This document shows positions 45,219 through 64,000 of a stretch of DNA of 64,000 bases, piece after piece (within the stretch, counting starts at the first letter, position 1; every line of letters begins with the position of its first letter). The DNA lies in the sequence record PQ657772.1, one strand, 5' to 3'. The notes under the pieces are model-generated. The model did no database searches. It saw only the letters and a list, made by a program, of their open reading frames with translations, and was not told the origin of the DNA. The position numbers were made by a program, and so were the translations under genes.

Positions 45219-45246
45219 TTATATTGCATCTCCTTTAGGTATATTC

Positions 45247-50778: not shown

Positions 50779-51004
50779 TTACTTTTTCCATAATAGTAAT
50801 TTTGAGATATTTAATTATACGTTCAACATGATACTCTTGCCTATCAGTTCCAAGAAGGTATGGTAATCTTTGGAATAAAACTTCTGCACTCCTTTCCGCT
50901 GGGGTTTGGTTTGGGTTGTGAGGAAGTTGATTTGTAAGTCTTTTGGATTTATCTAGTCTTTCTGTTAACTCATCATGTGTTAAGTATATCATTTCATTTT
51001 GCAT
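50768..51004 (-). CDS. LGTNYQ-family small protein
   Basis: LLGTDRQE. Confidence 0.8.
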   Translation of the reverse strand: MQNEMIYLTHDELTERLDKSKRLTNQLPHNPNQTPAERSAEVLFQRLPYLLGTDRQEYHVERIIKYLKITIMEKVNAK

Positions 51005-51240
51005 TTAATGTTTCTTACATAAATTGTCTGGATTAAACAATCAATCCAAGTTTGAATATATTGGTTTTGATACTGTGTGCCTAAGAGACTCTGCATTTTA
51101 AACTCTGCTTCAAGTTCATATCTCTTTTCTATAGAAAAGCTCAAATGACCATATTCTTTATCGTATCTTCTCAGTGCTTCCCCAATTCTATCAAATCTTT
51201 CTGCTAATCTGATGTTATTCACAATATTCATCGCATTCAT
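50989..51240 (-). CDS. LGTNYQ-family small protein
   Basis: LLGTQYQN. Confidence 0.8.
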   Translation of the reverse strand: MNAMNIVNNIRLAERFDRIGEALRRYDKEYGHLSFSIEKRYELEAEFKMQSLLGTQYQNQYIQTWIDCLIQTIYVRNIKCKMK

Positions 51241-51494
51241 CGATCAGTACACCTCAGTGGTTGGGTCATTTGATGAAAGTACAGCTTACCTTTGATTTCC
51301 AATAGTAACTCAGCAATTAATCGATTTACTTCTGGCTCTTGATAGTTTGTTCCCAATAATACACCCATCTTTAACTCACGCATCATAATCATTTTCTTAC
51401 TGTGTTGAATTTCTGGGTTGTGATAGATTGTATTACGTTTGTGCGTAATTTTTATCATACGCTCGGTATATTCATCTTTACTTAAATTGATCAT
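51237..51494 (-). CDS. LGTNYQ-family small protein
   Basis: LLGTNYQE. Confidence 0.8.
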   Translation of the reverse strand: MINLSKDEYTERMIKITHKRNTIYHNPEIQHSKKMIMMRELKMGVLLGTNYQEPEVNRLIAELLLEIKGKLYFHQMTQPLRCTDR

Positions 51495-51727
51495 TTTTTA
51501 TTCTCCAAAGCATCGCATTTATTTTCGATACAATTCATGAGTTCTCTAAGATAGTTTTTTACCTTACCTGCCTGATAGTTCGTCCCCAGGAAGTTGCATA
51601 ACTCTGCTTCTATCATTTTGATTCTTCTGTTATCAGGTTTCAATTTTTTGTTATTGAAGATTTGAATCCTTATATCCCTTGATGCATTTAAACGTTTTTG
51701 ATAATCATGGTAAGATAAATGAATCAT
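51491..51727 (-). CDS. LGTNYQ-family small protein
   Basis: FLGTNYQA. Confidence 0.8.
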   Translation of the reverse strand: MIHLSYHDYQKRLNASRDIRIQIFNNKKLKPDNRRIKMIEAELCNFLGTNYQAGKVKNYLRELMNCIENKCDALENKK

Positions 51728-51951
51728 TTACTTTGTATCTCTCTCTTGAGGGCATCAATTAACAACAGTACAGCATTCTCTTGATAGTTTGTTCCTAAGA
51801 CTGAAAGCATCTTAATCTCATTTACTACAATCAACTTCTTTGAGCGTTCAATAATGTTACTATTATAAACGGCGTTACGTGCTGGATAAGTTTTTGCAAG
51901 ACGTTCATAATATTCATCTTTACTTAAATTAATCATTTGCATTTCTCGCAC
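51724..51951 (-). CDS. LGTNYQ-family small protein
   Basis: VLGTNYQE. Confidence 0.8.
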   Translation of the reverse strand: MREMQMINLSKDEYYERLAKTYPARNAVYNSNIIERSKKLIVVNEIKMLSVLGTNYQENAVLLLIDALKREIQSK

Positions 51952-52177
51952 GTTTACTTAGTTTACTTCCAATGTATTTCTTAAGTGTAATTATATATTC
52001 CTCTACATAATACTCCTGATAGTTAGTTCCTAAGAATGCACATAGCTTTGTCTCACGCTTCATAATCATCTTATTTTCGTGTTTGTTTACTTCACCGAAA
52101 TGGATTTCATTAAGTTTAGGTAAGATTTTTGCTTGGCGTTCTTTATATTCAGATTTACTTAAATTAATCATTTGCAT
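51929..52177 (-). CDS. LGTNYQ-family small protein
   Basis: FLGTNYQE. Confidence 0.8.
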   Translation of the reverse strand: MQMINLSKSEYKERQAKILPKLNEIHFGEVNKHENKMIMKRETKLCAFLGTNYQEYYVEEYIITLKKYIGSKLSKRARNAND

Positions 52178-52386
52178 TTACTTTGGATCTCCTTGACTAA
52201 TGCATCAACCCACATGTCTATATACATTTGTTGATAGTTTGTCCCTATGAGTGCCCCTGCATAGAGTTCAGCTATCAATGCATGTTTTAGGTTGGCAGGG
52301 ATGCTCTTATCAGATTGAATCTTTACTCTTCTGTTGGCACATGTTTTCAGGAGTCTGATGTATTCAAAGCCTTGTAATTTTCTCAT
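52168..52386 (-). CDS. LGTNYQ-family small protein
   Basis: LIGTNYQQ. Confidence 0.8.
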   Translation of the reverse strand: MRKLQGFEYIRLLKTCANRRVKIQSDKSIPANLKHALIAELYAGALIGTNYQQMYIDMWVDALVKEIQSKCK

Positions 52387-52598
52387 TCTTTTGATATCAC
52401 CTTGTTACGTAAGGCACTTAACAATACGTCAGTGTAGATGTTTTGATAGTTTGTTCCTACGAATGCACCCAACTTCATTTCAGCTATTATAACACATTTA
52501 TCCTCTTGTGCAATAGACTTGTCTAAAGAAATACTAACAACTTTCCTTCTTATAGCTTGTAACCTCCAATGATACTGATACTCATTTAGGGTTATCAT
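52383..52598 (-). CDS. LGTNYQ-family small protein
   Basis: FVGTNYQN. Confidence 0.8.
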   Translation of the reverse strand: MITLNEYQYHWRLQAIRRKVVSISLDKSIAQEDKCVIIAEMKLGAFVGTNYQNIYTDVLLSALRNKVISKE

Positions 52599-52833
52599 TC
52601 TCTCGCCTCCATATCTCGGTTCTAATGTGTTGACATTGTGCTTCGATGAACATATCTATTGATTTGGCAATTGCGTTTTTATCTGTGCCTGTCATCAGTA
52701 CAAGCATCTCGGCCTCACAGTGAAGTAAACGCATGATATCATAGGGTAATATTCCAGATACCGTGTCATAGTGTTTCTGTGCCAGTGTCTGCAATAGTTT
52801 ACAATACATTTTGTGATTTAGTCTGTGTCGCAT
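52582..52833 (-). CDS. LGTNYQ-family small protein (divergent)
   Basis: LMTGTDKN. Confidence 0.65.
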   Translation of the reverse strand: MRHRLNHKMYCKLLQTLAQKHYDTVSGILPYDIMRLLHCEAEMLVLMTGTDKNAIAKSIDMFIEAQCQHIRTEIWRRENDNPK

Positions 52834-53090
52834 TGTTTATTCCATTCTTTTTTGGCTCTCTGGGTTTTATATTGGATTTGGTTTCTTAATGCTGATAAGT
52901 ATCGTTGAATGAACAGATCTTGATAGTTTGTTCCAATGAATTTCATAAGATAAAGTTCACCGTTGATAACATCCACTTCAGGTGCACCATATAAGGCATT
53001 GTTTTTTCTAAGGGCATGGATTAAAGAGAATAGGGCAGTTTGATACTCAACTCCTGATAAAGTCTTCATGTTTTGTGAGCAAATAATCAT
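52818..53090 (-). CDS. LGTNYQ-family small protein
   Basis: FIGTNYQD. Confidence 0.8.
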   Translation of the reverse strand: MIICSQNMKTLSGVEYQTALFSLIHALRKNNALYGAPEVDVINGELYLMKFIGTNYQDLFIQRYLSALRNQIQYKTQRAKKEWNKQCDTD

Positions 53091-53304
53091 CTAGTTTATC
53101 CTGTATAACATTCGTTAATTGTTCGATATATTCTGTGCAAAACTTATCTTGATATTGAGTCCCCATAAAGTACAGCAACCATAGCTCATTAACTTTAGCT
53201 CGCATTTGGTTCCATGTAAGGCTGGGGTCATCGTAGACTATCCTTGCTATAGGGGTTAGTTTACGGACTATAGTTTCATATTCATCTAGTGTTAAGTGTT
53301 TCAT
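53047..53304 (-). CDS. LGTNYQ-family small protein
   Basis: FMGTQYQD. Confidence 0.8.
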   Translation of the reverse strand: MKHLTLDEYETIVRKLTPIARIVYDDPSLTWNQMRAKVNELWLLYFMGTQYQDKFCTEYIEQLTNVIQDKLDDYLLTKHEDFIRS

Positions 53305-53525
53305 TTACCTAAATCCCTGACATGACATTTTAAGGCCGTGATGTGGTTGTCAACCATAACCTCCTGATAGTTTGTTCCTACAAATGGTATTAATGTTGAG
53401 TCTGTTAGTATAACATACTTTTCATTGGATGTTAGTGATTCATCATCGTAAACTTGAAGTCTAAAGTTCTTCCCTTGTTCTAATCGTTTAAGATATTCTT
53501 GGGTGTTTATGTCTTTCATTTGCAT
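53301..53525 (-). CDS. LGTNYQ-family small protein
   Basis: FVGTNYQE. Confidence 0.8.
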   Translation of the reverse strand: MQMKDINTQEYLKRLEQGKNFRLQVYDDESLTSNEKYVILTDSTLIPFVGTNYQEVMVDNHITALKCHVRDLGK

Positions 53526-53734
53526 TTGTCCCTTATTAAATCAGTGAGGGCAACTATGTGTGCAACAACATACTCTTCCTGAAAGTTCGTCCCCAGTACA
53601 GCCATCATGCGTATATCGGTGGTGTTTATCCTGTGTTCCCTTACACATAAACCTTCTGTGTGAGGAAGTGTAAAATATTTGTTTATTGCAGCAATGATAA
53701 TTTTATTCTTCTCGGAATTACTTAAATGTTTCAT
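53516..53734 (-). CDS. LGTNYQ-family small protein
   Basis: VLGTNFQE. Confidence 0.8.
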   Translation of the reverse strand: MKHLSNSEKNKIIIAAINKYFTLPHTEGLCVREHRINTTDIRMMAVLGTNFQEEYVVAHIVALTDLIRDKCK

Positions 53735-53943
53735 AGTTTGCTCTTAATGTATTTCTGGAGTGCAATTATATACTCATTCAAGAAGTGCTCCTGATAATCT
53801 GTGCCGAGGAATGCACCCAATAGTATATCATTTTCCAATACTAATGCTAAGTTCAAATCATCAGTCTCTTCATATACTATGAGAATTTCAAGTTGTCTTG
53901 CAGCGACGCGTTCGGTATATAGATTTGAGTTAATGCTATTCAT
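53731..53943 (-). CDS. LGTNYQ-family small protein
   Basis: FLGTDYQE. Confidence 0.8.
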   Translation of the reverse strand: MNSINSNLYTERVAARQLEILIVYEETDDLNLALVLENDILLGAFLGTDYQEHFLNEYIIALQKYIKSKL

Positions 53944-54152
53944 AGTTTACTCTTAATGTAATTCTGGAGTGCAATTAAGTATTCCCCTACATAATACACC
54001 TGAAAGTCTGTATCCAAAAATGCACCCATAAGTAAATCTTTTTCTAATACCCTTGATAAGTTAAGGTCTGCATTTGAATTGTATATAATTAAGATTTTAT
54101 TCTGGACAGAAACAAAACGTATCTTATATTCTTCTGGTGTTAAAAAAATCAT
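53940..54152 (-). CDS. LGTNYQ-family small protein
   Basis: FLDTDFQV. Confidence 0.78.
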   Translation of the reverse strand: MIFLTPEEYKIRFVSVQNKILIIYNSNADLNLSRVLEKDLLMGAFLDTDFQVYYVGEYLIALQNYIKSKL

Positions 54153-54358
54153 AGTTTACTCTTAATATCTTCTATTAAAAAATGAATCCAATCGTCAACA
54201 TACTCTTCCTGATGGTTTGTGTTCAGTACAGCCAACATGCGGATCTCTGCTCTTGCAACTTGGATTTCAGTTTTAGAAAGGTCTTTGCTGATATCAAACA
54301 TTAAGTCCATGTATTTCAAGATAAGACCGAATGATTGGGTTCGTGTTATAGTTTTCAT
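54149..54358 (-). CDS. LGTNYQ-family small protein
   Basis: VLNTNHQE. Confidence 0.78.
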   Translation of the reverse strand: MKTITRTQSFGLILKYMDLMFDISKDLSKTEIQVARAEIRMLAVLNTNHQEEYVDDWIHFLIEDIKSKL

Positions 54359-54555
54359 TGTTTCCTCGTGGACAATATTTCATTTTTCAATGCATCCATA
54401 TATTGAATCACCCATCTTCCCTGATAGCTTGTACCCAATGTAATCAAAAGGTATAACTCAATTCGTTCTAAGTTTGTGTCTGTGTTATAAATCTTTACCA
54501 TGTTTTTACGTAACAGTTCTTGATAATCTTCTTTATTTAAAATACGCATTTTCAT
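54355..54555 (-). CDS. LGTNYQ-family small protein
   Basis: TLGTSYQG. Confidence 0.78.
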   Translation of the reverse strand: MKMRILNKEDYQELLRKNMVKIYNTDTNLERIELYLLITLGTSYQGRWVIQYMDALKNEILSTRKQ

Positions 54556-54749
54556 AGTCTACCTTTTATGTCCCTTCGTAATTCTTGTAAGTATAGTTCG
54601 ATATACTTTTCTTGATAGTTAGTTCCTATGAAAAGTTTCATAACCAATTCACGCTTATATGCAATACCACGGATATGTGACATATGTAGGATATATGCCA
54701 TGTTGGATATGAGTGTGTGGTTGTGCTCTTCTTGAGTTAAAATACGCAT
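54552..54749 (-). CDS. LGTNYQ-family small protein (first gene of array)
   Basis: FIGTNYQE; GGAG RBS. Confidence 0.8.
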   Translation of the reverse strand: MRILTQEEHNHTLISNMAYILHMSHIRGIAYKRELVMKLFIGTNYQEKYIELYLQELRRDIKGRL

Positions 54750-54779
54750 AGGGACTCCATTAAAAATAATATCAATCCA

Positions 54780-54807
54780 ATAATATACGATTCATATAAA
54801 AAGTCAA
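54780..54807 (-). promoter_or_regulatory. Promoter driving the LGTNYQ array
   Basis: TTGACT-16 nt-TATTAT about 30 nt upstream of the first ATG. Confidence 0.65.
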
Positions 54808-54998
54808 TAACATTTTATAAGTAATACCCCTTTATCGAAGTCGCTAAGGTTACCCGCCCTTTAGCCCCCTACGCATTTTGCCATAGTCCAATCCCTTTTT
54901 ATTCATAAAAGTCAAGGGATTACCTATGCATTTTTTTAACGCTGAAGTTTAAAAATGCCTTGACTTTTTTATGATTCAGTACTAAATCCTTTTACGCA

Positions 54999-55208
54999 TT
55001 AATCCTTCGTTACGCTTACGATTATCTGTGTATCCCCATAGTCCTGCCATACTTCCACGCCAGCCGTCGCCCTGGTTAGTCGTGCTGTCATCTGCTTAAT
55101 GGTCTTAGGCTTTAGTGGAACCTGTTGCAGTACTGTACGCATAGCACCATCGACGTTATCATGTACGCCTGCAATAGTGCCTAGAACGTTGTATACTGTA
55201 TAGATCAT
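54999..55208 (-). CDS. Early-region hypothetical protein
   Basis: AGGAG RBS preceded by hairpin AGGCCGCT-CTCT-AGCGGCCT. Confidence 0.75.
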   Translation of the reverse strand: MIYTVYNVLGTIAGVHDNVDGAMRTVLQQVPLKPKTIKQMTARLTRATAGVEVWQDYGDTQIIVSVTKD

Positions 55209-55276
55209 GTGTATGTACTCCTGATATAGTTAAGGCCGCTAGAGAGCGGCCTATGATGTTTGATGATGTGTAACGC

Positions 55277-55678
55277 TTACAACCCTAAGATAGTGCGTGC
55301 TTCGTTACGTTCCGTACACAGCTGCATGATGTGAGCAAGTAAGTCCTTGCTAATGTATCCGGTGTTCATAGCTTCACGAATAGATACATCATAAGCACCG
55401 AACCCAGTGCGAACGATACGCACATCATTCAGGTTAGTATTATAGATACCGCCGAGATCAACGGCTTCGAATACTACATCAACAGAATATTCATTGTTGC
55501 CATCGTGGAAGTTTTCCAGTGCAATAGTATTGGAAACCGCCCAACGTTTGCAGTTTCCAATGATGCGGCACTGTTCCGGTTGGATAGTGCCATTACTTAC
55601 AGCGTACTCCAGTGCATCTTTACCAAAAGTCCGAGCCAGTACTAAAACGTCAGCGAAGGAAGTGATTGAGAAGGTCAT
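55277..55678 (-). CDS. Early-region hypothetical protein
   Basis: AAGGAG RBS; start moved to MTFSITSF. Confidence 0.78.
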   Translation of the reverse strand: MTFSITSFADVLVLARTFGKDALEYAVSNGTIQPEQCRIIGNCKRWAVSNTIALENFHDGNNEYSVDVVFEAVDLGGIYNTNLNDVRIVRTGFGAYDVSIREAMNTGYISKDLLAHIMQLCTERNEARTILGL

Positions 55679-55698
55679 GATAAAACTCCTTAATTTAG

Positions 55699-55760
55699 GA
55701 GGGAGAACCATTTCCCCCTCTCTATGTAAAACATTATACATGAATCTAAGTACTATGCAA
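55699..55760 (-). promoter_or_regulatory. Early promoter + stem-loop cassette
   Basis: TTGCAT-16-TATAAT, hairpin GAGGGGGAAATGGTTCTCCCTC. Confidence 0.78.
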
Positions 55761-55767
55761 GTACTTT

Positions 55768-56100
55768 TTACATTTTGATACCTGGATTCAGGTAGCGGTG
55801 AGATCCATATTCTGGATCGGTTTCGGTCCAGTACTGTAAATCTATAGTACCTTTAGCGTTAATCTTATCTACCAGCTTATTCATCTTAGCGTATACTACA
55901 TCAGCATCGATGCGTTTAAAGCCAGTGGCTTTAGTGAAGTAGTAGTGATTTGCTTCACTATCATTCAGGATGTACCGAGAACCGTTTGCCGTTTGTGCGA
56001 TAATGATTGAGTATTCTACGTTACGGTCGAGGCCGTCGATGAATACAGAGGAAACATTAGTACGGATGAAAGCTTTAACGATAGCGATTGAAGTAGTCAT
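55768..56100 (-). CDS. Early-region hypothetical protein
   Basis: AGGAG RBS; C-terminal IDLQYWTETDPEYGS. Confidence 0.78.
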   Translation of the reverse strand: MTTSIAIVKAFIRTNVSSVFIDGLDRNVEYSIIIAQTANGSRYILNDSEANHYYFTKATGFKRIDADVVYAKMNKLVDKINAKGTIDLQYWTETDPEYGSHRYLNPGIKM

Positions 56101-56118
56101 TTTGAATCTCCTAACTTT

Positions 56119-56182
56119 GTGGGCCGTCGCACCATTGCCGCCCTACGAGATACATTATCGCAGTACTGATATACTTTGTCAA
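56119..56182 (-). promoter_or_regulatory. Early promoter + stem-loop cassette
   Basis: TTGACA-17-GATAAT, GC hairpin before RBS. Confidence 0.72.
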
Positions 56183-56251
56183 TACTTTTTTTATTAATAG
56201 TTTTAGTTCCACCAGCAGATAGTTACTCACCGTTATTAACTATATATTTTG

Positions 56252-56335
56252 GATACACCTATGCACCCTGTGGGCTAGTTTTTGTCTATGCGTATATAAT
56301 AGCAAAGGGACTGACCGGAGTCAATCCCTTTTTTT
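56252..56335 (-). repeat. Terminator/promoter/small-RNA module, copy 1
   Basis: 41-bp core TATATAATAGCAAAGGGACTGACCGGAGTCAATCCCTTTTT identical at 56293, 59053, 62060. Confidence 0.85.
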
Positions 56336-56346
56336 ATTCTTTTTTG

Positions 56347-56547
56347 TTAGATGATTCTCCAATCATCAACGATCATGGTAAGATACCGAACCAGTGATTC
56401 GAGTGATTCGTGTTCTCGATAGTCTGCCGCTCCACCAGCGGTACAAGTACAGCCGATTAAGCCGTTTTGTAGTTCCTGGATCTTTACGTCGATCTGGTTG
56501 GCTTTAGCTTCTTTCAGTACTTCAACCAGGGCGATAGCGATAGACAT
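56347..56547 (-). CDS. Early-region hypothetical protein
   Basis: GGAG RBS after cassette. Confidence 0.75.
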   Translation of the reverse strand: MSIAIALVEVLKEAKANQIDVKIQELQNGLIGCTCTAGGAADYREHESLESLVRYLTMIVDDWRII

Positions 56548-56569
56548 AATGTTTTACTCCAAACTATTG

Positions 56570-56630
56570 GCGGGAGAACTATTCCCCCGCTCTATGTAAA
56601 ACATTATACATTACTGGTTAGTACTGTCAA
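56570..56630 (-). promoter_or_regulatory. Early promoter + stem-loop cassette
   Basis: TTGACA-16-TATAAT, hairpin CGGGGGAATAGTTCTCCCG. Confidence 0.8.
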
Positions 56631-56637
56631 ATAGTTT

Positions 56638-56895
56638 TTATGAAATATCTTCGATGTAGTCGGCCCATTTCATTTTTTCAGTACTGTCAATGGCTACCGG
56701 ATTATTTGGATCAAACCATTCACCATCACCGCAATACATACCCACGGCTACGGTTTTATAGCCATCCTGGGCCGTACACCACGACATTGCACGATAGATA
56801 TGGCCTTTAACTGGTTGCAGTACTGGTAACGTTTTATGGTCTTCTACGTAGGCCATAGCTTGAGGATTTACCCGATATTGTGTGAACTGATCCAT
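56638..56895 (-). CDS. Early-region hypothetical protein
   Basis: AAGGGG RBS; upstream TTGACA at 56947-56952. Confidence 0.75.
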   Translation of the reverse strand: MDQFTQYRVNPQAMAYVEDHKTLPVLQPVKGHIYRAMSWCTAQDGYKTVAVGMYCGDGEWFDPNNPVAIDSTEKMKWADYIEDIS

Positions 56896-56971
56896 TATGT
56901 TTCCCCTTGTAGTTAGTAAAGTTATTACATCAGTACTATCAAGCTATGTCAATAGTACTGAAATAAAACTT

Positions 56972-57196
56972 TTAGATTAGATTATTGAGGCCGTCAATGG
57001 TAGACTCACTTTCTTCTTTCTCCCATTGTCGGTAGTACTTCCATGCTTCATGATAGGTGGCGATTAGTTCATCTTTTTGATCCTGGTTACATGCCAGTAC
57101 TGAATCACGGTGAGCGGTGTTATAGATAGAATCGAATGATTTCTTCTCTTCTGCCAGGTTAGCTACTTCCCGCATCAGTTCATCAAAGTTAGCCAT
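56972..57196 (-). CDS. Early-region acidic helical protein
   Basis: AAGGAG RBS. Confidence 0.75.
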   Translation of the reverse strand: MANFDELMREVANLAEEKKSFDSIYNTAHRDSVLACNQDQKDELIATYHEAWKYYRQWEKEESESTIDGLNNLI

Positions 57197-57213
57197 TTTA
57201 TTACTCCTTTTAG

Positions 57214-57271
57214 TGGGGGAGGATATCTCCCCCTATGCAAAACATTATACTTTGTTTTAGTTATTATGCAA
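57214..57271 (-). promoter_or_regulatory. Early promoter + stem-loop cassette
   Basis: TTGCAT-16-TATAAT, hairpin GGGGGAGATATCCTCCCCC. Confidence 0.8.
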
Positions 57272-57527
57272 GTACTTTTTTCATATAAACATTAAATTCT
57301 ACACCGCCGTAACCTTCCACGATGATATGTTTTGCGTTATCACGTTTGCACATAGTGAAACCATCGTTTACGTGTTTTGCATTTTCCAGGGCGACATCAC
57401 CGATAGCGGCACATACGGCACTAATAACAGTATTCCGCAAAGTACTGGTATCATTGGCGGTCATAGTAGTTTGCAGTACTACGTTGTCGTATACGTGTGC
57501 ATTGATAGTGATTTCGATAGTGTTCAT
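57264..57527 (-). CDS. Early-region hypothetical protein
   Basis: AGGAG RBS; start moved to MNTIEIT. Confidence 0.75.
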   Translation of the reverse strand: MNTIEITINAHVYDNVVLQTTMTANDTSTLRNTVISAVCAAIGDVALENAKHVNDGFTMCKRDNAKHIIVEGYGGVEFNVYMKKVLA

Positions 57528-57545
57528 GGTGTATCTCCTGGACTT

Positions 57546-57607
57546 GAGGGGAAACCATTTCCCCCTCTCGATATAAAACATTATACGTTAATCTAACTAC
57601 AATGCAA
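57546..57607 (-). promoter_or_regulatory. Early promoter + stem-loop cassette
   Basis: TTGCAT-16-TATAAT, hairpin GAGGGGGAAATGGTTTCCCCTC. Confidence 0.8.
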
Positions 57608-57614
57608 GTACTTT

Positions 57615-57806
57615 TTAAATTTTATTTCCGATATAGTCCGGCATGTTCTTTTCAGTCATACGCTTTGCTAATGTCTGCATATGGCTTATAGCGTTCAAGG
57701 TGTCTTCCTCCAGGGATGAATCAAGATAATCAGGATCATTCTTCACCTTGCAATGATTATGATATCGTAGTACTGCCAGTACTTTTTTAACTTCTTCTAC
57801 TGTCAT
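57615..57806 (-). CDS. Early-region hypothetical protein
   Basis: Tiling ORF. Confidence 0.7.
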   Translation of the reverse strand: MTVEEVKKVLAVLRYHNHCKVKNDPDYLDSSLEEDTLNAISHMQTLAKRMTEKNMPDYIGNKI

Positions 57807-58075
57807 AATAAGTACCCCACTTCGTTAGCTTTCAGGTTAGTATCAATCATCAGTGGATTTTTGTAGTTCACAAAACGAGTAGTTTTCTCGATAGCGAAAC
57901 CCATATAATCCAGCTTACTAACAGTACATTCATTCTTAAAAACTTCTTTCGCTGCATCGATGGCTGATTGCATGGATAACCGACCATCTAAATTAATGTT
58001 TCCAAATGATCCACCAGCAGAAGTAGGATTACCGTTCATATCTTTAATGATCATAGTAGCGGAGTAGCTGGACAT
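57803..58075 (-). CDS. Early-region hypothetical protein
   Basis: AAGGA RBS after cassette. Confidence 0.75.
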   Translation of the reverse strand: MSSYSATMIIKDMNGNPTSAGGSFGNINLDGRLSMQSAIDAAKEVFKNECTVSKLDYMGFAIEKTTRFVNYKNPLMIDTNLKANEVGYLL

Positions 58076-58099
58076 AATTTTGTTTCCTTTTATTGGTGT

Positions 58100-58164
58100 G
58101 GGGAGAACTATTCTCCCCTTGATGTAAACTATTATACAGTACTGATATACTTTGTCAAATACTT
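58100..58164 (-). promoter_or_regulatory. Early promoter + stem-loop cassette (65 bp identical to 58594..58658)
   Basis: TTGACA-AAGTATATCAGTACTG-TATAAT, hairpin GGGGAGAATAGTTCTCCCC. Confidence 0.85.
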
Positions 58165-58572
58165 TTATTCGCCCATATAGATTAGATTATCATCGCCTAC
58201 ATAGGGATCGCAAACGTTGATTTCTTCGCAGTACTTAGTGAATATATCATCATAGTGACCGATATCACGATCCCAAAAACCAGTGCCGTGACCTTCGCGA
58301 GTAAGAAAGAGATCATGACCTGCATGACTATAAGTATAATCAGGATTATGGTGTTTTTGTACTGTTTCCATATCTTCACCATGTACAGCAAGGAAACGTG
58401 AACATGCAATCACTGCCGCTTGATGGGCTTGCTCTGATAATTCATAATCTTCCAGGTAATCGCCGTTCTCATTGTGTACAGTACTGAATTGCATAGCTTC
58501 AATGTAACCAGCGACCATTGCAGCATGATTTTTATCGTTGGCGATGGACCGAGCTTGATTAGTAGTAGTCAT
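58165..58572 (-). CDS. Early-region protein with GHDxxLTRxGHGxGFWDR motif
   Basis: AGHDLFLTREGHGTGFWDRD; function unknown. Confidence 0.75.
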   Translation of the reverse strand: MTTTNQARSIANDKNHAAMVAGYIEAMQFSTVHNENGDYLEDYELSEQAHQAAVIACSRFLAVHGEDMETVQKHHNPDYTYSHAGHDLFLTREGHGTGFWDRDIGHYDDIFTKYCEEINVCDPYVGDDNLIYMGE

Positions 58573-58593
58573 GATTTTATTCCTTTTAGTATC

Positions 58594-58658
58594 GGGGAGA
58601 ACTATTCTCCCCTTGATGTAAACTATTATACAGTACTGATATACTTTGTCAAATACTT
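58594..58658 (-). promoter_or_regulatory. Early promoter + stem-loop cassette (65 bp identical to 58100..58164)
   Basis: Exact direct repeat. Confidence 0.85.
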
Positions 58659-58878
58659 AATTACGGATAAAGTGATAAAGACCATTATCATCATTAACGC
58701 CCCATACTGATTTACCATTTAAACCAGTGAAGCCGGATTGCAATTCAATATGGAAACCGTTAGCATCAACGACGAAAACTTTTTTATTTTCATCCCGATA
58801 GCATTGATATTCTTCACCTGCTTTAAATGCTGCATCATTCAGAAGATTTGAAGCGTGAACGCAGGTCATAGTAGTCAT
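58657..58878 (-). CDS. Early-region hypothetical protein
   Basis: AAGGA RBS; start moved to MTTMTC. Confidence 0.72.
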   Translation of the reverse strand: MTTMTCVHASNLLNDAAFKAGEEYQCYRDENKKVFVVDANGFHIELQSGFTGLNGKSVWGVNDDNGLYHFIRN

Positions 58879-58900
58879 CGTCTTGATTCCTTTTAGTACC

Positions 58901-58961
58901 AGGGAGAACCATTTCCCCCTCTCGATATAAAACATTATACGCTCATTGAGATAGTTTGCAA
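58901..58961 (-). promoter_or_regulatory. Early promoter + stem-loop cassette
   Basis: TTGCAA-16-TATAAT, hairpin AGGGGGAAATGGTTCTCCCT. Confidence 0.8.
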
Positions 58962-59006
58962 GTACTTTTTATCAAATAGTTTTCAGTACTGAATACTTAT
59001 ATAATA

Positions 59007-59094
59007 GATACACTTCCGCACCCTATGGGTCAGTGAGTTATCTCTCAATGGATATATAATAGCAAAGGGACTGACCGGAGTCAATCCCTTTTTT
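59007..59094 (-). repeat. Terminator/promoter/small-RNA module, copy 2
   Basis: 41-bp core identical; downstream ACCCATAGGGT hairpin. Confidence 0.85.
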
Positions 59095-59102
59095 AATCTT
59101 TT

Positions 59103-59687
59103 TTATCGTGTTACCTTACTTGCTGCCACATCACGCTTTTTATAGTACTGATTCCAGATATTGCTGGTTAAACCGTAATCAAGTACTTTAATAAGTCCAT
59201 TACGATCCTGGCCGATATTCTGTTTTCTGATATCTCTTATCGTTAGTGTTGATAATGTATCATCAACGTGTTGTAGTGCATCAGCAAAGCGGTGCTGGCG
59301 TTCGATTGCATTACGTTTAATATTGTACTTTAATTCATTGCACGCGTTTACGTGCTTCACACTGCCTTTGCTTGCAGTACTCAACCGATCCATAACGATA
59401 AACATATTATCAGGATCGCATAAATGCATATGCACCTTTGCAAAGTACTGTTTCAACTGAGGGCGGTCATAGTCTAAAAAATTCCATACCTTACATTCAG
59501 TTTCATTTTGTTCGACACCCGCATCACAATTCGCGACCTTAATCACTAACCGATCATTTAAAGCGAATACTATACGGGAAGAACCAGCACCGATGATCTC
59601 CAGGCCAGCTAACCGACAAGCTGAAAGGATCTCTTTGTTGGTTTCCATTTCTGACAGTGTACGGATGAATTTAGTATATTTACGCAT
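59103..59687 (-). CDS. Protein kinase-like (ePK/APH-fold) early protein
   Basis: Gly-rich IGAGSSRIVF, VIKVA, NETE, catalytic DIRKQNIG, VLDYGL; start moved to MRKYTK. Confidence 0.78.
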   Translation of the reverse strand: MRKYTKFIRTLSEMETNKEILSACRLAGLEIIGAGSSRIVFALNDRLVIKVANCDAGVEQNETECKVWNFLDYDRPQLKQYFAKVHMHLCDPDNMFIVMDRLSTASKGSVKHVNACNELKYNIKRNAIERQHRFADALQHVDDTLSTLTIRDIRKQNIGQDRNGLIKVLDYGLTSNIWNQYYKKRDVAASKVTR

Positions 59688-59718
59688 TGCATGTTCTCCT
59701 TGAGTTAATGAAACTATA

Positions 59719-59961
59719 TTACAGTACTTTACTATCAATGGCAACTACTTTTTTAACATTAACGGCGTGGATCACTTCCTTAGTGTTTTTAGTACTGAAT
59801 ACTTTCGCCGCTCCTTGTTCGACCGTGATACGATAGCGACCATTAACATCAACCATATTAATAAAGTCCGGCGTGCTGAATGGTGTTGTTTTACATTTGA
59901 GTACTGTTAACAGTTCCACCAGCGATGTAGTTTCTTTGATACGTTTTTCTAAAGTAATCAT
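59719..59961 (-). CDS. Early-region hypothetical protein
   Basis: GGGGGGA RBS; promoter TTGACA-17-TATTAT at 59991-60019. Confidence 0.72.
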   Translation of the reverse strand: MITLEKRIKETTSLVELLTVLKCKTTPFSTPDFINMVDVNGRYRITVEQGAAKVFSTKNTKEVIHAVNVKKVVAIDSKVL

Positions 59962-60015
59962 TTTGTTTCCCCCCGTGTTGGTATGTGTACATAATACTAA
60001 AACAATTGAGTACTG

Positions 60016-60270
60016 TCAACGTGATATTAGTTTTATTTTCTTATTGTATTGTTGATGCTCATAAAGGTTTATCTTTCCTGTGTTCTCGATTACTATCCTG
60101 TTGTTAGTGTCCACGTCGATTACACGCAGTTTCCCGTTGCTTAACTTCCTAGGTAATAGGTTACCATTAATAAACTCATTAGCAAGCTGTACGGCCTTTG
60201 TGATGATTCTCTGAGGTGCTTTATAGTGTACCCGTAAGATGTTATCTTTATATAGTTGAACCTTAATCAT
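60016..60270 (-). CDS. Possible ParE/RelE-like toxin-fold protein
   Basis: P.RI..KA......G....RKL......V....RI......EHQQYN pattern recalled from phage ParE-like family; not searched. Confidence 0.45.
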   Translation of the reverse strand: MIKVQLYKDNILRVHYKAPQRIITKAVQLANEFINGNLLPRKLSNGKLRVIDVDTNNRIVIENTGKINLYEHQQYNKKIKLISR

Positions 60271-60284
60271 TTTGTTTGTCCTAT

Positions 60285-60310
60285 AAAAAAGGCGGGAACT
60301 GATCCCGCCG
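60285..60310 (-). terminator. Intrinsic terminator
   Basis: GGCGGGA-TCAGT-TCCCGCC then TTTTTT. Confidence 0.8.
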
Positions 60311-60331
60311 TGTTGTTAGTACTGCAAGTTA

Positions 60332-60736
60332 TTAGATAACCTGGCGGCGTTTACTGTATACTGTTACACGATTACCCTTACGGTCGTGTCGGATCTCTTT
60401 CTGGTTGCGAATCAGTTCACTTGGACGCTTAAGGTTTGCCAGGTGATCCGCGTGAGTCCATGCATTTGCGTTAACTGTAACTTCAATATCAGAACCTTTC
60501 AAGAAGTCATCTTGAGCGTTCAGTACTTCAGCCAGTTCTTGAGCTTGCTTTAGTTCTGCTGCTGTAAGTACAGGCTCAGGTGAATTCACAATATCAGAGA
60601 TCTCTTTGAACTGTACCGCCCAGCGTTTACCAGTAGGAGAATCTTTACCCATGTCTTTAAATGTTTCACCTTCCTCACGGGCAACGATGCGAGCTTGTTC
60701 ACGGGTAGCGAAGAATTTAGTAATCATGGTGTACAT
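60332..60736 (-). CDS. Early-region hypothetical protein
   Basis: AGGA RBS; promoter TTGACA-17-TATAAT at 60776-60804. Confidence 0.78.
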   Translation of the reverse strand: MYTMITKFFATREQARIVAREEGETFKDMGKDSPTGKRWAVQFKEISDIVNSPEPVLTAAELKQAQELAEVLNAQDDFLKGSDIEVTVNANAWTHADHLANLKRPSELIRNQKEIRHDRKGNRVTVYSKRRQVI

Positions 60737-60826
60737 CCTATTAGTTAAGTTAATTAGTACTACAAGTTAGAGTCTATTATAAAGTACTATCTGGGCAATG
60801 TCAAATAGTACTTTAAATGGATTCTA

Positions 60827-61150
60827 TTACATGTCTTTCTTACGTTTTACATCGTAGTAGCGAACTGTAATTTCTTTGTTGATCTCTTTCTCAATTCTGT
60901 GTAGTACTTTCTCTTTCGGGTTGAAACCTATTACAGTTTCCTTAATGATTTCTAAACCCGTGTACTCACCTTGTGTGCCGTAACCGTATGTAAAGGTTTC
61001 GTGTCCCAGGTCTTCCCAGCGATCACCAATCAATGCGGACACGTAGCAGGAGTGGTAAGTATTGCCGTGGCTATCAGTCCACCGATTAACTTTAATGTCA
61101 AAGGAGGTTACAATTTTCAGTTCTACTTTCTGGGTAAGGATCATAGCCAT
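60827..61150 (-). CDS. Early-region hypothetical protein
   Basis: Follows cassette 61174..61234. Confidence 0.78.
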   Translation of the reverse strand: MAMILTQKVELKIVTSFDIKVNRWTDSHGNTYHSCYVSALIGDRWEDLGHETFTYGYGTQGEYTGLEIIKETVIGFNPKEKVLHRIEKEINKEITVRYYDVKRKKDM

Positions 61151-61173
61151 TTTTATTTCTCTCTCTTTGTTAG

Positions 61174-61234
61174 GAGGGGAACCATTCCCCTCGCTTGATG
61201 TAAACTATTATACAGTACTAAGATACTTTGTCAA
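61174..61234 (-). promoter_or_regulatory. Early promoter + stem-loop cassette
   Basis: TTGACA-16-TATAAT with AGTACT in spacer; near-identical to 61444..61505. Confidence 0.82.
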
Positions 61235-61237
61235 TAC

Positions 61238-61420
61238 TTATTTTTTGGAAAGTTTACGCATTAATTCTACGCTTTCTTGTGAACGTTTTGCTACTTGACA
61301 AGCTGCATGGGCAGTAAACATTTTTGTATAGTCTGACGCTTTGCCACCGAACCGAGCGGCACGTTCACGGGCACTTGGAACTAATACGATTTCTTTCTTA
61401 CAGATAGTGCACTTAGCCAT
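61238..61420 (-). CDS. Small zinc-binding (CxxC...HxxC) early protein
   Basis: MAKCTICKK...TAHAAC; start moved. Confidence 0.7.
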   Translation of the reverse strand: MAKCTICKKEIVLVPSARERAARFGGKASDYTKMFTAHAACQVAKRSQESVELMRKLSKK

Positions 61421-61443
61421 TTTAATTTCTCTCTCTTTGTTAG

Positions 61444-61505
61444 GAGGGGAACCGTTTCCCCTCACTTGATGTAAACTATTATACAGTACTAAGATACTTT
61501 GTCAA
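61444..61505 (-). promoter_or_regulatory. Early promoter + stem-loop cassette
   Basis: TTGACA-16-TATAAT, hairpin GAGGGGAAACGGTTCCCCTC. Confidence 0.82.
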
Positions 61506-61508
61506 TAC

Positions 61509-61784
61509 TTAAGTATTGTAAATGTCGTGAATAGTGATAAAGTTTTTACGACCGTAAACATGTAAATCAGTATCAATGTAGTGCTTATCAAGTACATCCT
61601 CGACGCTTAAAGACGTGTCGTGAATATCTTCATAAAATTGTGGATCAACAATCGTGCTTAAGTCATCTGGCGTTAACTTATCGTTAAGGCATTGAACCGC
61701 CTGGATATCTGCTTCACGTTTCCATTGTTCCAGATTAGTAGTCAGTACTTGCTCGATTTCGTTAGCTGTAAGTAAAGTCCGCAT
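61509..61784 (-). CDS. Early-region acidic protein
   Basis: AAGGA RBS; promoter TTGACA-16-TATAAT at 61818-61845. Confidence 0.75.
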   Translation of the reverse strand: MRTLLTANEIEQVLTTNLEQWKREADIQAVQCLNDKLTPDDLSTIVDPQFYEDIHDTSLSVEDVLDKHYIDTDLHVYGRKNFITIHDIYNT

Positions 61785-61894
61785 TTTAATGTTTCCTTAT
61801 CAGTGGTTGATGTAAGTATTATACTCGTTTACTTTCTATTGTCAAACTATTTTATCAGGGGAGTTTTTCGTATGTCTTACTCCTGGACTACTTA

Positions 61895-61961
61895 ACGGGG
61901 TTACTTATTTCGTTCCCCGTCCTGATGTAAAACATTATACGCTTATCGTGATACTTTGCAA
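61895..61961 (-). promoter_or_regulatory. Early promoter + stem-loop cassette with no downstream ORF
   Basis: TTGCAA-16-TATAAT, hairpin, AGGAG, but no ATG/GTG ORF before the next promoter. Confidence 0.7.
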
Positions 61962-62018
61962 GTACTTTTTTAAAAATAGTTTTCAGTACTTGATAGTACT
62001 AGCCACCAGCAAACAATA

Positions 62019-62100
62019 GATACATTTATGCACCCGGTGGGCTAATTTGTTTCTATGCGTATATAATAGCAAAGGGACTGACCGGAGTCAATCCCTTTTT
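62019..62100 (-). repeat. Terminator/promoter/small-RNA module, copy 3
   Basis: 41-bp core identical; downstream GCCCACCGGGT hairpin. Confidence 0.85.
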
Positions 62101-62109
62101 CAATTATTT

Positions 62110-62259
62110 TTAAACTTCTTTCGGGTTGCGATATGTGATAGCGTTCGGGTACATTTGTTTAATGTTATTCCATGCCTGGTTAACATTATAACCACTTGAT
62201 CGAATCAGTTGGTTATTACCGACACCTTGAAACACTACTTCAAATAAGAATTCTTTCAT
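62110..62259 (-). CDS. 49-aa early protein (not in ORF track)
   Basis: MKEFLFEVVFQGVGNNQLIRSSGYNVNQAWNNIKQMYPNAITYRNPKEV; ATGA overlap. Confidence 0.65.
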   Translation of the reverse strand: MKEFLFEVVFQGVGNNQLIRSSGYNVNQAWNNIKQMYPNAITYRNPKEV

Positions 62260-62429
62260 GCTTTCACCTCGCTATCTGCTTTGCCTTTACGCCAGGCCGT
62301 TGCTAATTGTTCGCGTTGCCATAAGTCGAGTGATACGTAAAGTTTTGCATTATCACCCTTCGGATATTCGCCAGTAGTACCAATCCGATAAAACAGATCT
62401 TTCAGTACTGTTAATTCTACCTGGACCAT
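62256..62429 (-). CDS. Early-region hypothetical protein
   Basis: GAGGA RBS; start moved to MVQVELTV. Confidence 0.7.
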   Translation of the reverse strand: MVQVELTVLKDLFYRIGTTGEYPKGDNAKLYVSLDLWQREQLATAWRKGKADSEVKA

Positions 62430-62450
62430 TATACTTTCCTCTTTGTTAGG

Positions 62451-62508
62451 AGGGGAACTATTCCCCTTCCGATATAAAACATTATACACTTTATTCAGTA
62501 CTGTGCAA
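62451..62508 (-). promoter_or_regulatory. Early promoter + stem-loop cassette
   Basis: TTGCAC-16-TATAAT, hairpin AGGGGAATAGTTCCCCT. Confidence 0.8.
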
Positions 62509-62515
62509 GTACTTT

Positions 62516-62728
62516 TTAATCTTTCAGCCAATGATCCTGAATGAATTTTTCACCGGAACCGTGCTGCATTGATTGTAACAGACGTTCGCGATGAGCGGCG
62601 GCGAATTGCTCAGTACTATGCGTTACACCTGGTTGATATCTGGATTCACCATTTGGGGCGATGTATTGTACATCCCACGGTTTTTCGTTAGTATCAGACC
62701 ATTTACGAACGATTAGTTGACCTTGCAT
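62516..62728 (-). CDS. Early-region hypothetical protein
   Basis: GAGGA RBS. Confidence 0.72.
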   Translation of the reverse strand: MQGQLIVRKWSDTNEKPWDVQYIAPNGESRYQPGVTHSTEQFAAAHRERLLQSMQHGSGEKFIQDHWLKD

Positions 62729-62745
62729 TTTTCTTTCCTCTTAGT

Positions 62746-62805
62746 GGGGAGAATCATTTCTCCCCTTCATGTAAACTATTATACAGTACTATAATCTATT
62801 GTCCA
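62746..62805 (-). promoter_or_regulatory. Early promoter + stem-loop cassette
   Basis: TGGACA-16-TATAAT, hairpin GGGGAGAAATGATTCTCCCC. Confidence 0.78.
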
Positions 62806-62813
62806 GTACTTTT

Positions 62814-63002
62814 TTACAGTTTATGAATTAATTCTTTATCTAAGCGATAGCGTACATTATTAATGGTAACAGCATTATTTTTAATGCTACGCTGTACGGG
62901 TCCACCAGCAATAACAAACGTTGCTTTATTGCCCCGAACAATGATAGCACTTCCAGGATTACCGAAATCATCTTGTACTAAAATACTTGATAAGTTTTCC
63001 AT
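62814..63002 (-). CDS. Early-region hypothetical protein
   Basis: GAGGA RBS. Confidence 0.72.
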   Translation of the reverse strand: MENLSSILVQDDFGNPGSAIIVRGNKATFVIAGGPVQRSIKNNAVTINNVRYRLDKELIHKL

Positions 63003-63019
63003 TTTTATTTCCTCTTAGT

Positions 63020-63077
63020 AGGGGAAGATGTTTCCCCTTGATGCAAGTACTATAACAGTACTGAAAACTAAATGCAA
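63020..63077 (-). promoter_or_regulatory. Early promoter + stem-loop cassette
   Basis: TTGCAT-17-TATAGT, hairpin AGGGGAAACATCTTCCCCT. Confidence 0.75.
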
Positions 63078-63080
63078 GTA

Positions 63081-63437
63081 CTATGATAAAATCATGATAG
63101 GATATTCACTATCGATCAGTACCTCGAATCCGAAACCTTCGTACCATTCTTTAAGATTAAAGGCGTTATCTTCTCCCGTATCGCATTCTAAGATGATACA
63201 ATCTGAATCATCGGCGGCATCAATAAAGGCATTCATTAATTCGTTACCTTCACCATTGCCCCGACTATCAGGATCAACATAAAGAGAATCAATAAACGCT
63301 ACACGGTCATAATCAAGATCCGGTGCAATGATTCCACGTTTAACAAACCAGTACTGCAATTGTGCTACTTTGCCCTGTACCTGATAACCAGTGATCTCGC
63401 CATTGTCAGTAGTACGCGTGATATGTTGTATTCCCAT
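63081..63437 (-). CDS. GNAT-family acetyltransferase
   Basis: IDSLYVDPDSRGNGEG (motif A, RGxGxG), LKEWYEGFGF; promoter TTGACA-16-TATAAT at 63467-63494. Confidence 0.8.
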   Translation of the reverse strand: MGIQHITRTTDNGEITGYQVQGKVAQLQYWFVKRGIIAPDLDYDRVAFIDSLYVDPDSRGNGEGNELMNAFIDAADDSDCIILECDTGEDNAFNLKEWYEGFGFEVLIDSEYPIMILS

Positions 63438-63500
63438 GATTACTATCCTCAGTTAAGATATAAAACATTATACACTATCTTTCAGTACTGTCAATACTTT

Positions 63501-63758
63501 TTATCTCATAGATCTATGCCAACAATTACGCGGATCTCTTTTAAAAGTACTATCATGATCCTCCTGGCAAGTAATACAATACATGCACCCTATAACGGCC
63601 TGGCGTCGATTCTCAGGGATTTTATCGCCGCAGTCGAGGCAATGTACCAGTGATTCTCTTTGTGCGTTAATTTGCTTTCTAGCGTGGTTAACGGCTGCCT
63701 GAATCACTGCGTGAATCTCGTCTTGTTCGGCCCCGTCTTTCGCGTATCCTACTGCCAT
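63501..63758 (-). CDS. TraR/DksA-family C4 zinc-finger protein
   Basis: N-terminal DGAEQDEI, then CLDCGDKIPENRRQAVIGCMYCITCQ. Confidence 0.85.
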   Translation of the reverse strand: MAVGYAKDGAEQDEIHAVIQAAVNHARKQINAQRESLVHCLDCGDKIPENRRQAVIGCMYCITCQEDHDSTFKRDPRNCWHRSMR

Positions 63759-63919
63759 TATTTTAACCTCATTATAAAAATACTATAGTACTGTAATGCT
63801 ACAATAATACTACTAGTGTTTATCTTATTCAAACCATATGATACTACATATCCACCAGCATTACCACGGATAGTAACGCCTTTGTACTGTCTATATAAAT
63901 TCAACTGCGTATATTGCCT

Positions 63920-63991
63920 TTGATCAAGAATTGATCAGAATTATACGCCTTATGCTAAATTGATCCAGTACTTTTTGATCATTTATTGATC
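63920..63991. repeat. Five TTGATC (GATC) copies in 72 bp
   Basis: At 63920, 63931, 63960, 63975, 63986. Confidence 0.7.
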
Positions 63992-64000
63992 GATATTATA

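Follow-up and report, generated by a model that had tools for sequence, protein, structure and literature searches.

Promoter-hairpin units and probable single-gene exchange in the terminal repeat of the jumbo phage EC.P1

The DNA analyzed here, positions 55699-63500 of a window of 64,000 nucleotides from sequence record PQ657772.1, carries small genes, nearly every one of which is preceded by a strong promoter of its own, in most units combined with a GC hairpin and followed by a Shine-Dalgarno sequence (SD). The stretch is 100% identical to positions 348143-355944 of Escherichia phage EC.P1 (PQ657772.1; record length 356,444 bp), an Asteriusvirus jumbo phage of the 121Q/PBECO4 group; the window forms the end of this record. 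Its architecture is real and well defined: cassettes of the type named PeSL (promoter early stem-loop) in T4-type phages are combined with a predicted early module in a direct terminal repeat (DTR). We consider it likely that this is a promoter-dense accessory-gene module of the Asteriusvirus DTR, in which the leader hairpins act as stabilizers or insulators of RNA and single genes are exchanged in the manner of PeSLs.

Promoter units of the terminal repeat

The boundary of the DTR was mapped from the three relatives with determined physical ends, and all three place it at window position 54847/8: G17 (record position 1), vB_Ec-M-J (annotated DTR 1-21525) and fEgEco12 (end of its DTR). The fEgEco12 repeat of 20,993 bp was established by PhageTerm and restriction mapping (PMC13070987), and a DTR of 20.7 kb was reported for Sharanji (PMC11895373). 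The remainder of the EC.P1 repeat lies at the start of the circularised record (locus L003). Compared with about 90 other Asteriusvirus jumbo phages (121Q, PBECO4, G17, Sharanji and others), the stretch shows 90-97% identity, but a coverage of only 55-86%. The gene organization switches sharply at the DTR boundary: outside (53940-54749), there are small promoter-less genes with 4-bp overlaps, and inside (54847-64000), nearly every gene has its own promoter.

Since every gene between 55000 and 64000 is on the minus strand, the cassettes were read on this strand. Between 55679 and 63494 we found 20 sigma70-type promoter units, 14 with a GC hairpin and six without, exactly as a preliminary description of this DNA had counted them. 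The 5' bases of their -35 boxes are located at 63494, 63077, 62805, 62508, 61961, 61845, 61505, 61234, 60804, 60019, 59744, 58961, 58652, 58158, 57607, 57271, 56952, 56630, 56182 and 55760. Among the 14 hairpins, that of the 56182 unit is imperfect, while that of the 61961 unit is long and belongs to a unit without an open reading frame (ORF). The spacer between -35 and -10 was also described correctly as mostly 16 nt long (14 of the 20 units; 17 nt in the other six). About 19 of the 24 genes have their own promoter, and the rest are translationally coupled or located after a terminator. The earlier view of an array in which each self-contained unit comprises a promoter, in most cases a hairpin, an SD and a gene is supported.

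A typical unit starts after the stop codon of the preceding gene with an A-rich flank (often AAAGTAC), followed by the -35 box (TTGACA or TTGCAA/T), the spacer of 16 or 17 nt, the -10 box TATAAT and a conserved start region, (A/G)NWTT(A/G)(C/T)AT. Then come a stem of 8-9 bp, 6-12 unpaired nucleotides, the SD and the ATG. The start region, which is A/T-rich, is kept across the units (TATAAT-RNWTTRYAT). The upstream flanks are of the AAAAGTAC type, and the combination of a strong sigma70-like promoter with an A/T-rich upstream region is one that PeSLs have as well.

The strong promoters are far more numerous than expected by chance. Eight perfect 12/12 matches to TTGACA-N16-18-TATAAT were present on the minus strand versus 0.007 expected (300 shuffles), and 12 matches of at least 11/12 were present versus 0.26 in the shuffles. 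A generic scan at 9/12 gave 37 matches versus 29.2, which is not above chance in this AT-rich DNA, and therefore only the strong matches (at least 11/12) were used as evidence. Without exception, the promoters have the orientation of the genes, and an SD and an ATG come directly after them.

A signature composed of the -10 box and the leader motif, TATAATRNWTTRYAT, was detected 29 times in the 356-kb EC.P1 genome, on one strand only, and 28 of these 29 sites are inside the DTR. The reversed-pattern control gave 0 matches. The same signature occurs 23 times per DTR copy in G17, with none in its 330 kb of unique sequence, and 21 times in 121Q, always inside 17 kb. We conclude that the promoter(-hairpin) units are confined to the DTR. 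The whole DTR contains 48 promoter-like sites on the coding strand (up to 3 mismatches), 29 of them with the canonical hairpin, or about 45 units of promoter, SD and small ORF, of which about two thirds have a hairpin.

Two pairs of closely similar cassettes, both pointed out previously, were also present. The cassettes with hairpins at 58100-58118 and 58594-58612 are identical over 65 bp, and those with hairpins at 61174 and 61444 are 88% identical over 76 nt and 94% over 47 nt. The units and the elements between them are as follows.

54847-64000, minus-strand genes: inner ~9.2 kb of the ~21-kb DTR, boundary mapped from three relatives
63438-63494, minus: promoter without hairpin, TTGACA-16-TATAAT; GNAT acetyltransferase gene 63081-63437
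63003-63077, minus: promoter-hairpin-SD cassette, TTGCAT-17-TATAGT, hairpin 63020-63038; gene 62814-63002
62729-62805, minus: promoter-hairpin-SD cassette, TGGACA-16-TATAAT, hairpin 62746-62765; gene 62516-62728
62430-62508, minus: promoter-hairpin-SD cassette, TTGCAC-16-TATAAT, hairpin 62452-62466; gene 62256-62429 and overlapping gene 62110-62259
61990-62098, minus: ORF-less unit with bidirectional terminator hairpin 62071-62098, embedded TTGACT-17-TATTAT promoter, conserved CCCAYNGGGTGC core, Chi site at 62003
61846-61961, minus: ORF-less cassette, TTGCAA-16-TATAAT, long hairpin at ~61894-61921 and a second stem, next promoter directly after it
61785-61845, minus: promoter without hairpin, TTGACA-16-TATAAT; gene 61509-61784
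61421-61505, minus: promoter-hairpin-SD cassette, hairpin 61444-61463; gene 61238-61420, a variable module
61151-61234, minus: promoter-hairpin-SD cassette, hairpin 61174-61192, near-identical to 61421-61505; gene 60827-61150
60728-60804, minus: promoter without hairpin, TTGACA-17-TATAAT; gene 60332-60727
60291-60309, minus: intrinsic terminator of canonical form (GC stem of 7 bp, then T6); precedes the promoter-less ParE-like gene 60016-60270
59962-60019, minus: promoter without hairpin, TTGACA-17-TATTAT; gene 59719-59961
59688-59744, minus: weaker promoter, TTGCCA-17-TAATAT, within the last part of the preceding gene; gene 59103-59687 (194 aa)
58985-59091, minus: ORF-less unit with terminator hairpin 59064-59091, embedded TTGACT-17-TATTAT promoter, conserved core
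58879-58961, minus: promoter-hairpin-SD cassette, hairpin 58901-58920 including a G.U pair; gene 58657-58878
58573-58652, minus: promoter-hairpin-SD cassette, hairpin 58594-58612; gene 58165-58572, a variable module
58076-58158, minus: promoter-hairpin-SD cassette, hairpin 58100-58118; genes 57803-58075 and 57615-57806
57528-57607, minus: promoter-hairpin-SD cassette, TTGCAT-16-TATAAT, hairpin 57546-57567; gene 57264-57527
57197-57271, minus: promoter-hairpin-SD cassette, hairpin 57215-57233; gene 56972-57196
56896-56952, minus: promoter without hairpin, TTGACA-17-TGTAAT; gene 56638-56895
56548-56630, minus: promoter-hairpin-SD cassette, hairpin 56570-56590 including a G.U pair; gene 56347-56547
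56200-56331, minus: ORF-less unit with terminator hairpin 56304-56331, embedded promoter, conserved core, Chi site at 56209
56101-56182, minus: promoter TTGACA-17-GATAAT with imperfect GC hairpin; gene 55768-56100
55679-55760, minus: promoter-hairpin-SD cassette, TTGCAT-16-TATAAT, hairpin 55699-55720; gene 55277-55678

The leader hairpin and the AGTACT words

The stem of the hairpin has 8-9 bp, with a purine-rich 5' arm of the GGGGAGAA type, a loop of 3-5 nt and the complementary arm. It starts 11-14 nt downstream of the -10 box in most copies; with the A of the conserved CAT as the presumed first transcribed base, this corresponds to about +4 to +6. Since the hairpin is located wholly downstream of this predicted start, it would be part of the transcript as a 5' leader. 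A stable stem-loop with a G-run and a C-run in the intergenic unit, as known from PeSLs, is present in 14 of the 20 units and in 29 copies in the whole DTR; these 29 have a mean dG of -12.5 kcal/mol and a mean z of -2.7 versus shuffles.

Stems this GC-rich and stable could act as attenuators or terminators that block read-through from upstream and isolate each gene, as proposed for the PeSLs of RB49 and phi1; indeed, a PeSL stem-loop of RB49 cut lacZ expression like a strong terminator (PMC2839356). In EC.P1, however, none of the 29 DTR hairpins is followed by a T-run, and their tails are A/C-rich. Lacking a U-tract, they are 5'-leader elements rather than classical intrinsic terminators. Moreover, a terminator scan found canonical terminators in the DTR that are separate from the leader stems (60291-60309 and three bidirectional hairpins), and a stem downstream of its own promoter would be no less of an attenuator for the message from this promoter than for read-through. 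We therefore regard a terminator function of the leader hairpins as unlikely.

The pairing itself was analyzed with 39-45 unique stems from nine phages. It was counted by a script anchored on the loop, as MAFFT alignments left the arms out of register. Stem positions 1-8 were paired in 98.7% of cases, a raw value that is biased upward by the selection of hairpins by folding, versus 85.6% (sd 1.0) with permuted 3' arms, and 0 of 2000 permutations reached the observed value. Double-sided changes were detected at all eight stem positions, for example G-C, A-T and C-G at positions 7 and 8. Furthermore, 15-19 G.U pairs were present, but only 2-3 A.C pairs, which were restricted to the outermost position. 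Since an A.C pair here is a G.U pair on the opposite strand, keeping G.U but not A.C indicates that pairing is selected on the sense-strand RNA. From this comparison of sequences we conclude that the hairpin is under selection as sense-strand RNA. Stabilization of the mRNA by the hairpin is plausible.

In every stem, the purine-rich arm is the 5' arm. This could be due to descent by duplication or to a benefit for promoter escape; in work on the T5 N25 promoter, purine-rich initial transcribed sequences reportedly favor escape. The loops differ in length and sequence (16 types in 39 stems), which argues against a loop-specific reader. Two other functions were considered and rejected: an RNase III site, since the stems have only 8-9 bp, and an antitermination site similar to nut/boxB, since loop sequence and length vary. 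Rfam gave no match in 54000-64000 at E values up to 1.

The preliminary description had also placed the word AGTACT in the spacer or the -35 flank of the promoters. Indeed, it was found there in 19 of the 20 promoters, and in 39 of the 48 promoters of the whole DTR. The registers are fixed at 7-8, 16-18 and 27 nt upstream of the -10 box, one or two helical turns apart, and 45 of the 51 whole-DTR sites occupy them. Often the word is extended to CAGTACTG. AGTACT is, however, a genome-wide iterated palindrome: the window contains 217 copies versus 17 expected, about 12-fold over composition, coding DNA included. Its density is 12.4 per kb in the noncoding DTR, 4.4 in the coding DTR and 2.8 in the rest of the window. 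Two islands, 37015-46155 and 49003-54978, are free of AGTACT, the second ending near the DTR boundary at 54847; otherwise there are 3-7 copies per kb. Since the word is over-represented across the window, its presence in promoters alone is no sign of a promoter-specific operator, and the dedicated operator proposed previously is not supported.

Because of the fixed registers, a regulatory role of AGTACT may still exist. A phage-encoded regulator could bind AGTACT, the hairpin or both, at the level of DNA or of the RNA leader, and switch the early set off (or on) together. Such a regulator would fit the registers, the peak of AGTACT density in noncoding DTR and the highly conserved inner stem sequence. 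On the other hand, the enrichment extends far beyond promoters, the registers may be inherited with duplicated cassettes, the variety of loops speaks against an RNA reader that recognizes them, and no candidate reader was identified. Altogether, we consider common control by such a regulator very unlikely.

Single-gene differences among relatives and a proposed mechanism

To locate junctions, 54500-64000 was compared by BLAST with eight relatives, and overlaps of alignment blocks were used. We detected eight single-gene differences, all of them with junctions inside cassettes. Gene 58165-58572 is absent in five phages, with the junction in the 65-bp identical repeat. Six phages have an additional module of ~270 bp at 59958-60043, with an 86-bp repeat on its flanks. 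UE-S1, phAPEC6 and 121Q lack gene 61238-61420, and four phages have an extra gene of 324 nt at 62814. Two phages are without the GNAT gene 63081-63437, with the junction between two promoter spacers that share CAGTACTG. Finally, gene 57264-57527 is absent in 121Q, and extra genes are present at 56129-56197 in 121Q and at 61803-61857 in phAPEC6 and 121Q. In six of the eight events, the difference is flanked by direct repeats of 55-104 bp, which correspond to the cassettes. Insertions and deletions (indels) between close relatives that are bounded by such units are also typical of PeSLs.

The combination of modules is different in each of the nine genomes, and since several pairs of modules show all four combinations of presence and absence, the modules assort independently. 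In addition, a wastewater metagenome contig joins 61193 to 61465; it was the only joint kept, since most of the others had less than 30 nt on one side and were disregarded. Gene content between the cassettes is thus not invariant among relatives, invariance being refuted by the eight indels and the contig, and the earlier proposal of gene shuffling between cassettes gains support.

Cassettes and modules of this kind also occur beyond Asteriusvirus. An 89-bp cassette used as a query gave matches with 78-98% coverage in Vequintavirinae and related myoviruses of ~145 kb. The phages A73 and LTH01 have cassettes in common with EC.P1 (81-86% identity over ~80 nt), and they share with it the promoter classes, an identical 19-nt hairpin and the ORF-less unit with the long hairpin. 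Several gene modules are present in both at 70-85% nucleotide identity, in an order different from that of EC.P1. Whole modules are thus common to an unrelated subfamily in another order, as expected if genes are shuffled between cassettes.

The preliminary description had called the array integron-like. In such a system, a site-specific recombinase would capture and excise cassettes at a defined attachment site in each unit. One gene per unit, the variable gene content and the circular excision products known for PeSLs (PMC2839356) are in line with this idea. However, the 24 proteins encoded in this part of the DTR are all at most 194 aa long. No recombinase or integrase family was found among the 20 that were scanned against Pfam, and none was named by PHROGs, which was applied to 10 proteins, including two of the four outside the Pfam scan. 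No att-like site was detected either, and most junctions fall into plain homology that is 55-104 bp long and has no constant place in the unit. Moreover, an integron array is served by a single promoter, whereas the units here have one each. With no integrase family among the proteins scanned and no att site found, the label integron-like is not supported, and capture by a site-specific recombinase appears extremely improbable. We conclude from the genome comparisons that the array probably undergoes PeSL-like modular shuffling by homologous recombination.

The following mechanism would combine these observations. Host RNA polymerase would fire all promoters right after DNA entry, giving rise to many short and independent early messages. 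The early timing of the DTR genes is suggested by analogy with the phages PA5oct and CBB. The hairpin would be stabilizer and insulator at once: similar to a 5' cap for its own message, and a barrier to 3' exonucleases for read-through from the upstream gene. Its purine-rich arm would provide a start region favoring promoter escape. Since the units of 60-100 bp are direct repeats of one another, homologous recombination of the ordinary kind would act between them and delete, duplicate or exchange single genes by the PeSL mechanism, while expression would remain unbroken. Recombination could be driven by the phage or by RecBCD and Chi, and could take place within one genome or between co-infecting phages.

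Several points weigh against this account, in addition to the selection bias in the pairing value. Six promoters have no hairpin at all; if they work, no hairpin is needed. Conservation of the inner stem (GAA...UUC and the G-C run) goes far beyond structural need, which may be due to shared descent or to a sequence-specific reader. From the likely start to the stem, 4-6 nt would be unpaired, and in Escherichia coli a 5' end of this length reaches or exceeds what still allows protection from 5'-end-dependent decay. Two of the eight indel events (62814; 63063/63484) lack a long flanking repeat, and junctions in intergenic DNA are partly expected, since indels inside genes are selected against. 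Finally, the only raw-read RNA-seq run, X21, contained 0 reads on the stretch, and the metatranscriptome contig runs cannot show transcript starts and may be DNA.

Neighboring features and relation to known systems

A family could be assigned to only three gene products of this part of the DTR; a fourth, the 194-aa protein encoded by gene 59103-59687, had a kinase-like match below the Pfam cut-off.

63501-63758, minus: DksA/TraR C4 zinc finger protein (family match)
63081-63437, minus: GNAT acetyltransferase (family match)
60016-60270, minus: ParE-like toxin domain protein of 84 aa (Pfam PF24732, E 6e-11)

The ParE-like gene is the only one here that is located after a canonical terminator and has no promoter of its own. 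A role of the DTR genes in host takeover is plausible.

Three copies of an ORF-less unit are present (56200-56331, 58985-59091 and 61990-62098). In each, a bidirectional terminator hairpin, AGGGAYTGAC...GTCARTCCCT, contains an embedded TTGACT-17-TATTAT promoter and is followed by the core CCCAYNGGGTGC-N5-GTRTATC. More copies of this terminator-promoter unit are located in the rest of the DTR (L003 near 209, 2416 and 8557). The other, tandem ORF-less unit at 61846-61961 is conserved at 84% identity in the Vequintavirinae phage A73, and also occurs at L003 8220-8338.

Chi sites (CCACCAGC on the plus strand) are located at 56209, 56432, 58011, 59916, 62003, 62902 and 63852. Chi (GCTGGTGG) is dense in the DTR and nearly always in one orientation, with ~10 per ~21 kb versus 19 in the 330-kb unique part of G17 (counted in the whole records of G17 and fEgEco12; the reversed-pattern control gave 3 in the whole genome). 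For RecBCD entering from the physical ends, the first Chi in the correct orientation is reached after ~0.6 kb at one end and 1.4 kb at the other. Such an arrangement looks like end protection or stimulation of recombination. In the middle of the DTR (~58000-64000 and L003 1-6000), GATC reaches 7-15 per 2 kb, 3-5 times its density in other parts of the window (1-7), and TGATCA forms a small cluster (63921, 63932 and 63976) in a 240-bp noncoding stretch upstream of the DksA-like gene. An apparent tandem repeat at 63874-64000 was rejected: the last 127 bp are the first 127 bp of the EC.P1 record. Since relatives have a single copy, this duplication is an untrimmed k=127 assembly overlap in a public 'circular' record and not biological.

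[quoted passage not shown] They mediate indels and form mini-circles (PMC2839356; PMC4122927). The EC.P1 units resemble them in the near-consensus sigma70 promoter, the A/T-rich upstream flank, the stem-loop with G-run and C-run, the SD and the small ORFan, and also in being repeated many times in a hyperplastic region with indels between close relatives bounded by the repeats. Gene 55277-55678 has homologues in RB49, phi1 and Vequintavirinae, and the RB49 copy adjoins PeSLs.

The stem, however, is placed differently. In the three intergenic regions of RB49 inspected, the PeSL arms enclose or overlap the -10 box, are largely outside the transcript and are read as a terminator. In EC.P1, by contrast, the whole stem is in the 5' leader, tolerates G.U pairs on the RNA strand and has no U-tract, and thus it does not have the position, within or around the promoter, of a PeSL terminator or attenuator. 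In EC.P1, a RaK2-like jumbo phage, the units are also confined to the 21-kb terminal repeat, whereas PeSLs of T4-type phages are scattered in several hyperplastic regions. The analogy to PeSLs drawn previously is apt for the mechanism, in which the units would serve as recombination linkers. Judged by sequence, the units are probably a variant of PeSLs rather than members of this class, with the same linker role but another stem site and another probable function.

With the early modules of SPO1- and T5-type phages, the array has in common its location in a long DTR; T5, with its pre-early region in the terminal repeat, is a similar case. The Bacillus phage SPO1 has a host-takeover module in its terminal redundancy (PMC6873191, PMC10531801), and here, too, a long terminal repeat is packed with small genes that are under strong host-type early promoters and may redirect the host. 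SPO1 differs in phage lineage and host, and neither hairpin leaders nor cassette repeats were described for it. PA5oct and CBB belong to the same broad RaK2-like clade as EC.P1. In PA5oct, the DTR contains many small genes that are highly transcribed early, in addition to abundant noncoding RNAs (PMC7318152), and for CBB, RpoD-like promoters that have UP-like elements and are found within the terminal repeat and beside it were taken as early (PMC5259590). These papers describe no promoter-hairpin-SD cassette, no conservation at the RNA level and no indels bounded by cassettes. Integron arrays are similar in having one gene per unit and a variable content, but neither an integrase nor attC nor a single Pc promoter was found in this part of EC.P1, and its junctions are in ordinary homology. 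The genome paper on rV5 lists 33 consensus promoters and no such cassette (PMC3606486), and we found no description of AGTACT or of these cassettes in the literature on Asteriusvirus, RaK2-like and rV5-like phages.

A more far-reaching idea, which we regard as rather unlikely, is that the promoter-hairpin-SD unit is a shared 'expression standard' by which small early genes move between Asteriusvirus and Vequintavirinae. AGTACT words phased at intervals of one or two turns over the -35 box and the spacer would then dock a putative genome-wide reader that shuts the early set off when it accumulates. Apart from this, the fixed registers connect the genome-wide AGTACT signal with the predicted early promoters, and such a putative reader thereby becomes accessible to experiments.

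The units extend the PeSL idea, that is, regulatory cassettes doubling as recombination linkers, beyond T4-type phages, namely to RaK2-like jumbo phages, with their terminal repeat, and to Vequintavirinae. They also indicate that a stem-loop of this kind need not be a terminator but can belong to the RNA leader. They also represent a compact natural set of very strong promoter, leader and ribosome-binding-site parts. In summary, they allow a concrete explanation, open to testing, of how orphan early genes may be reshuffled by the hundreds among coliphages that are candidates for therapy.

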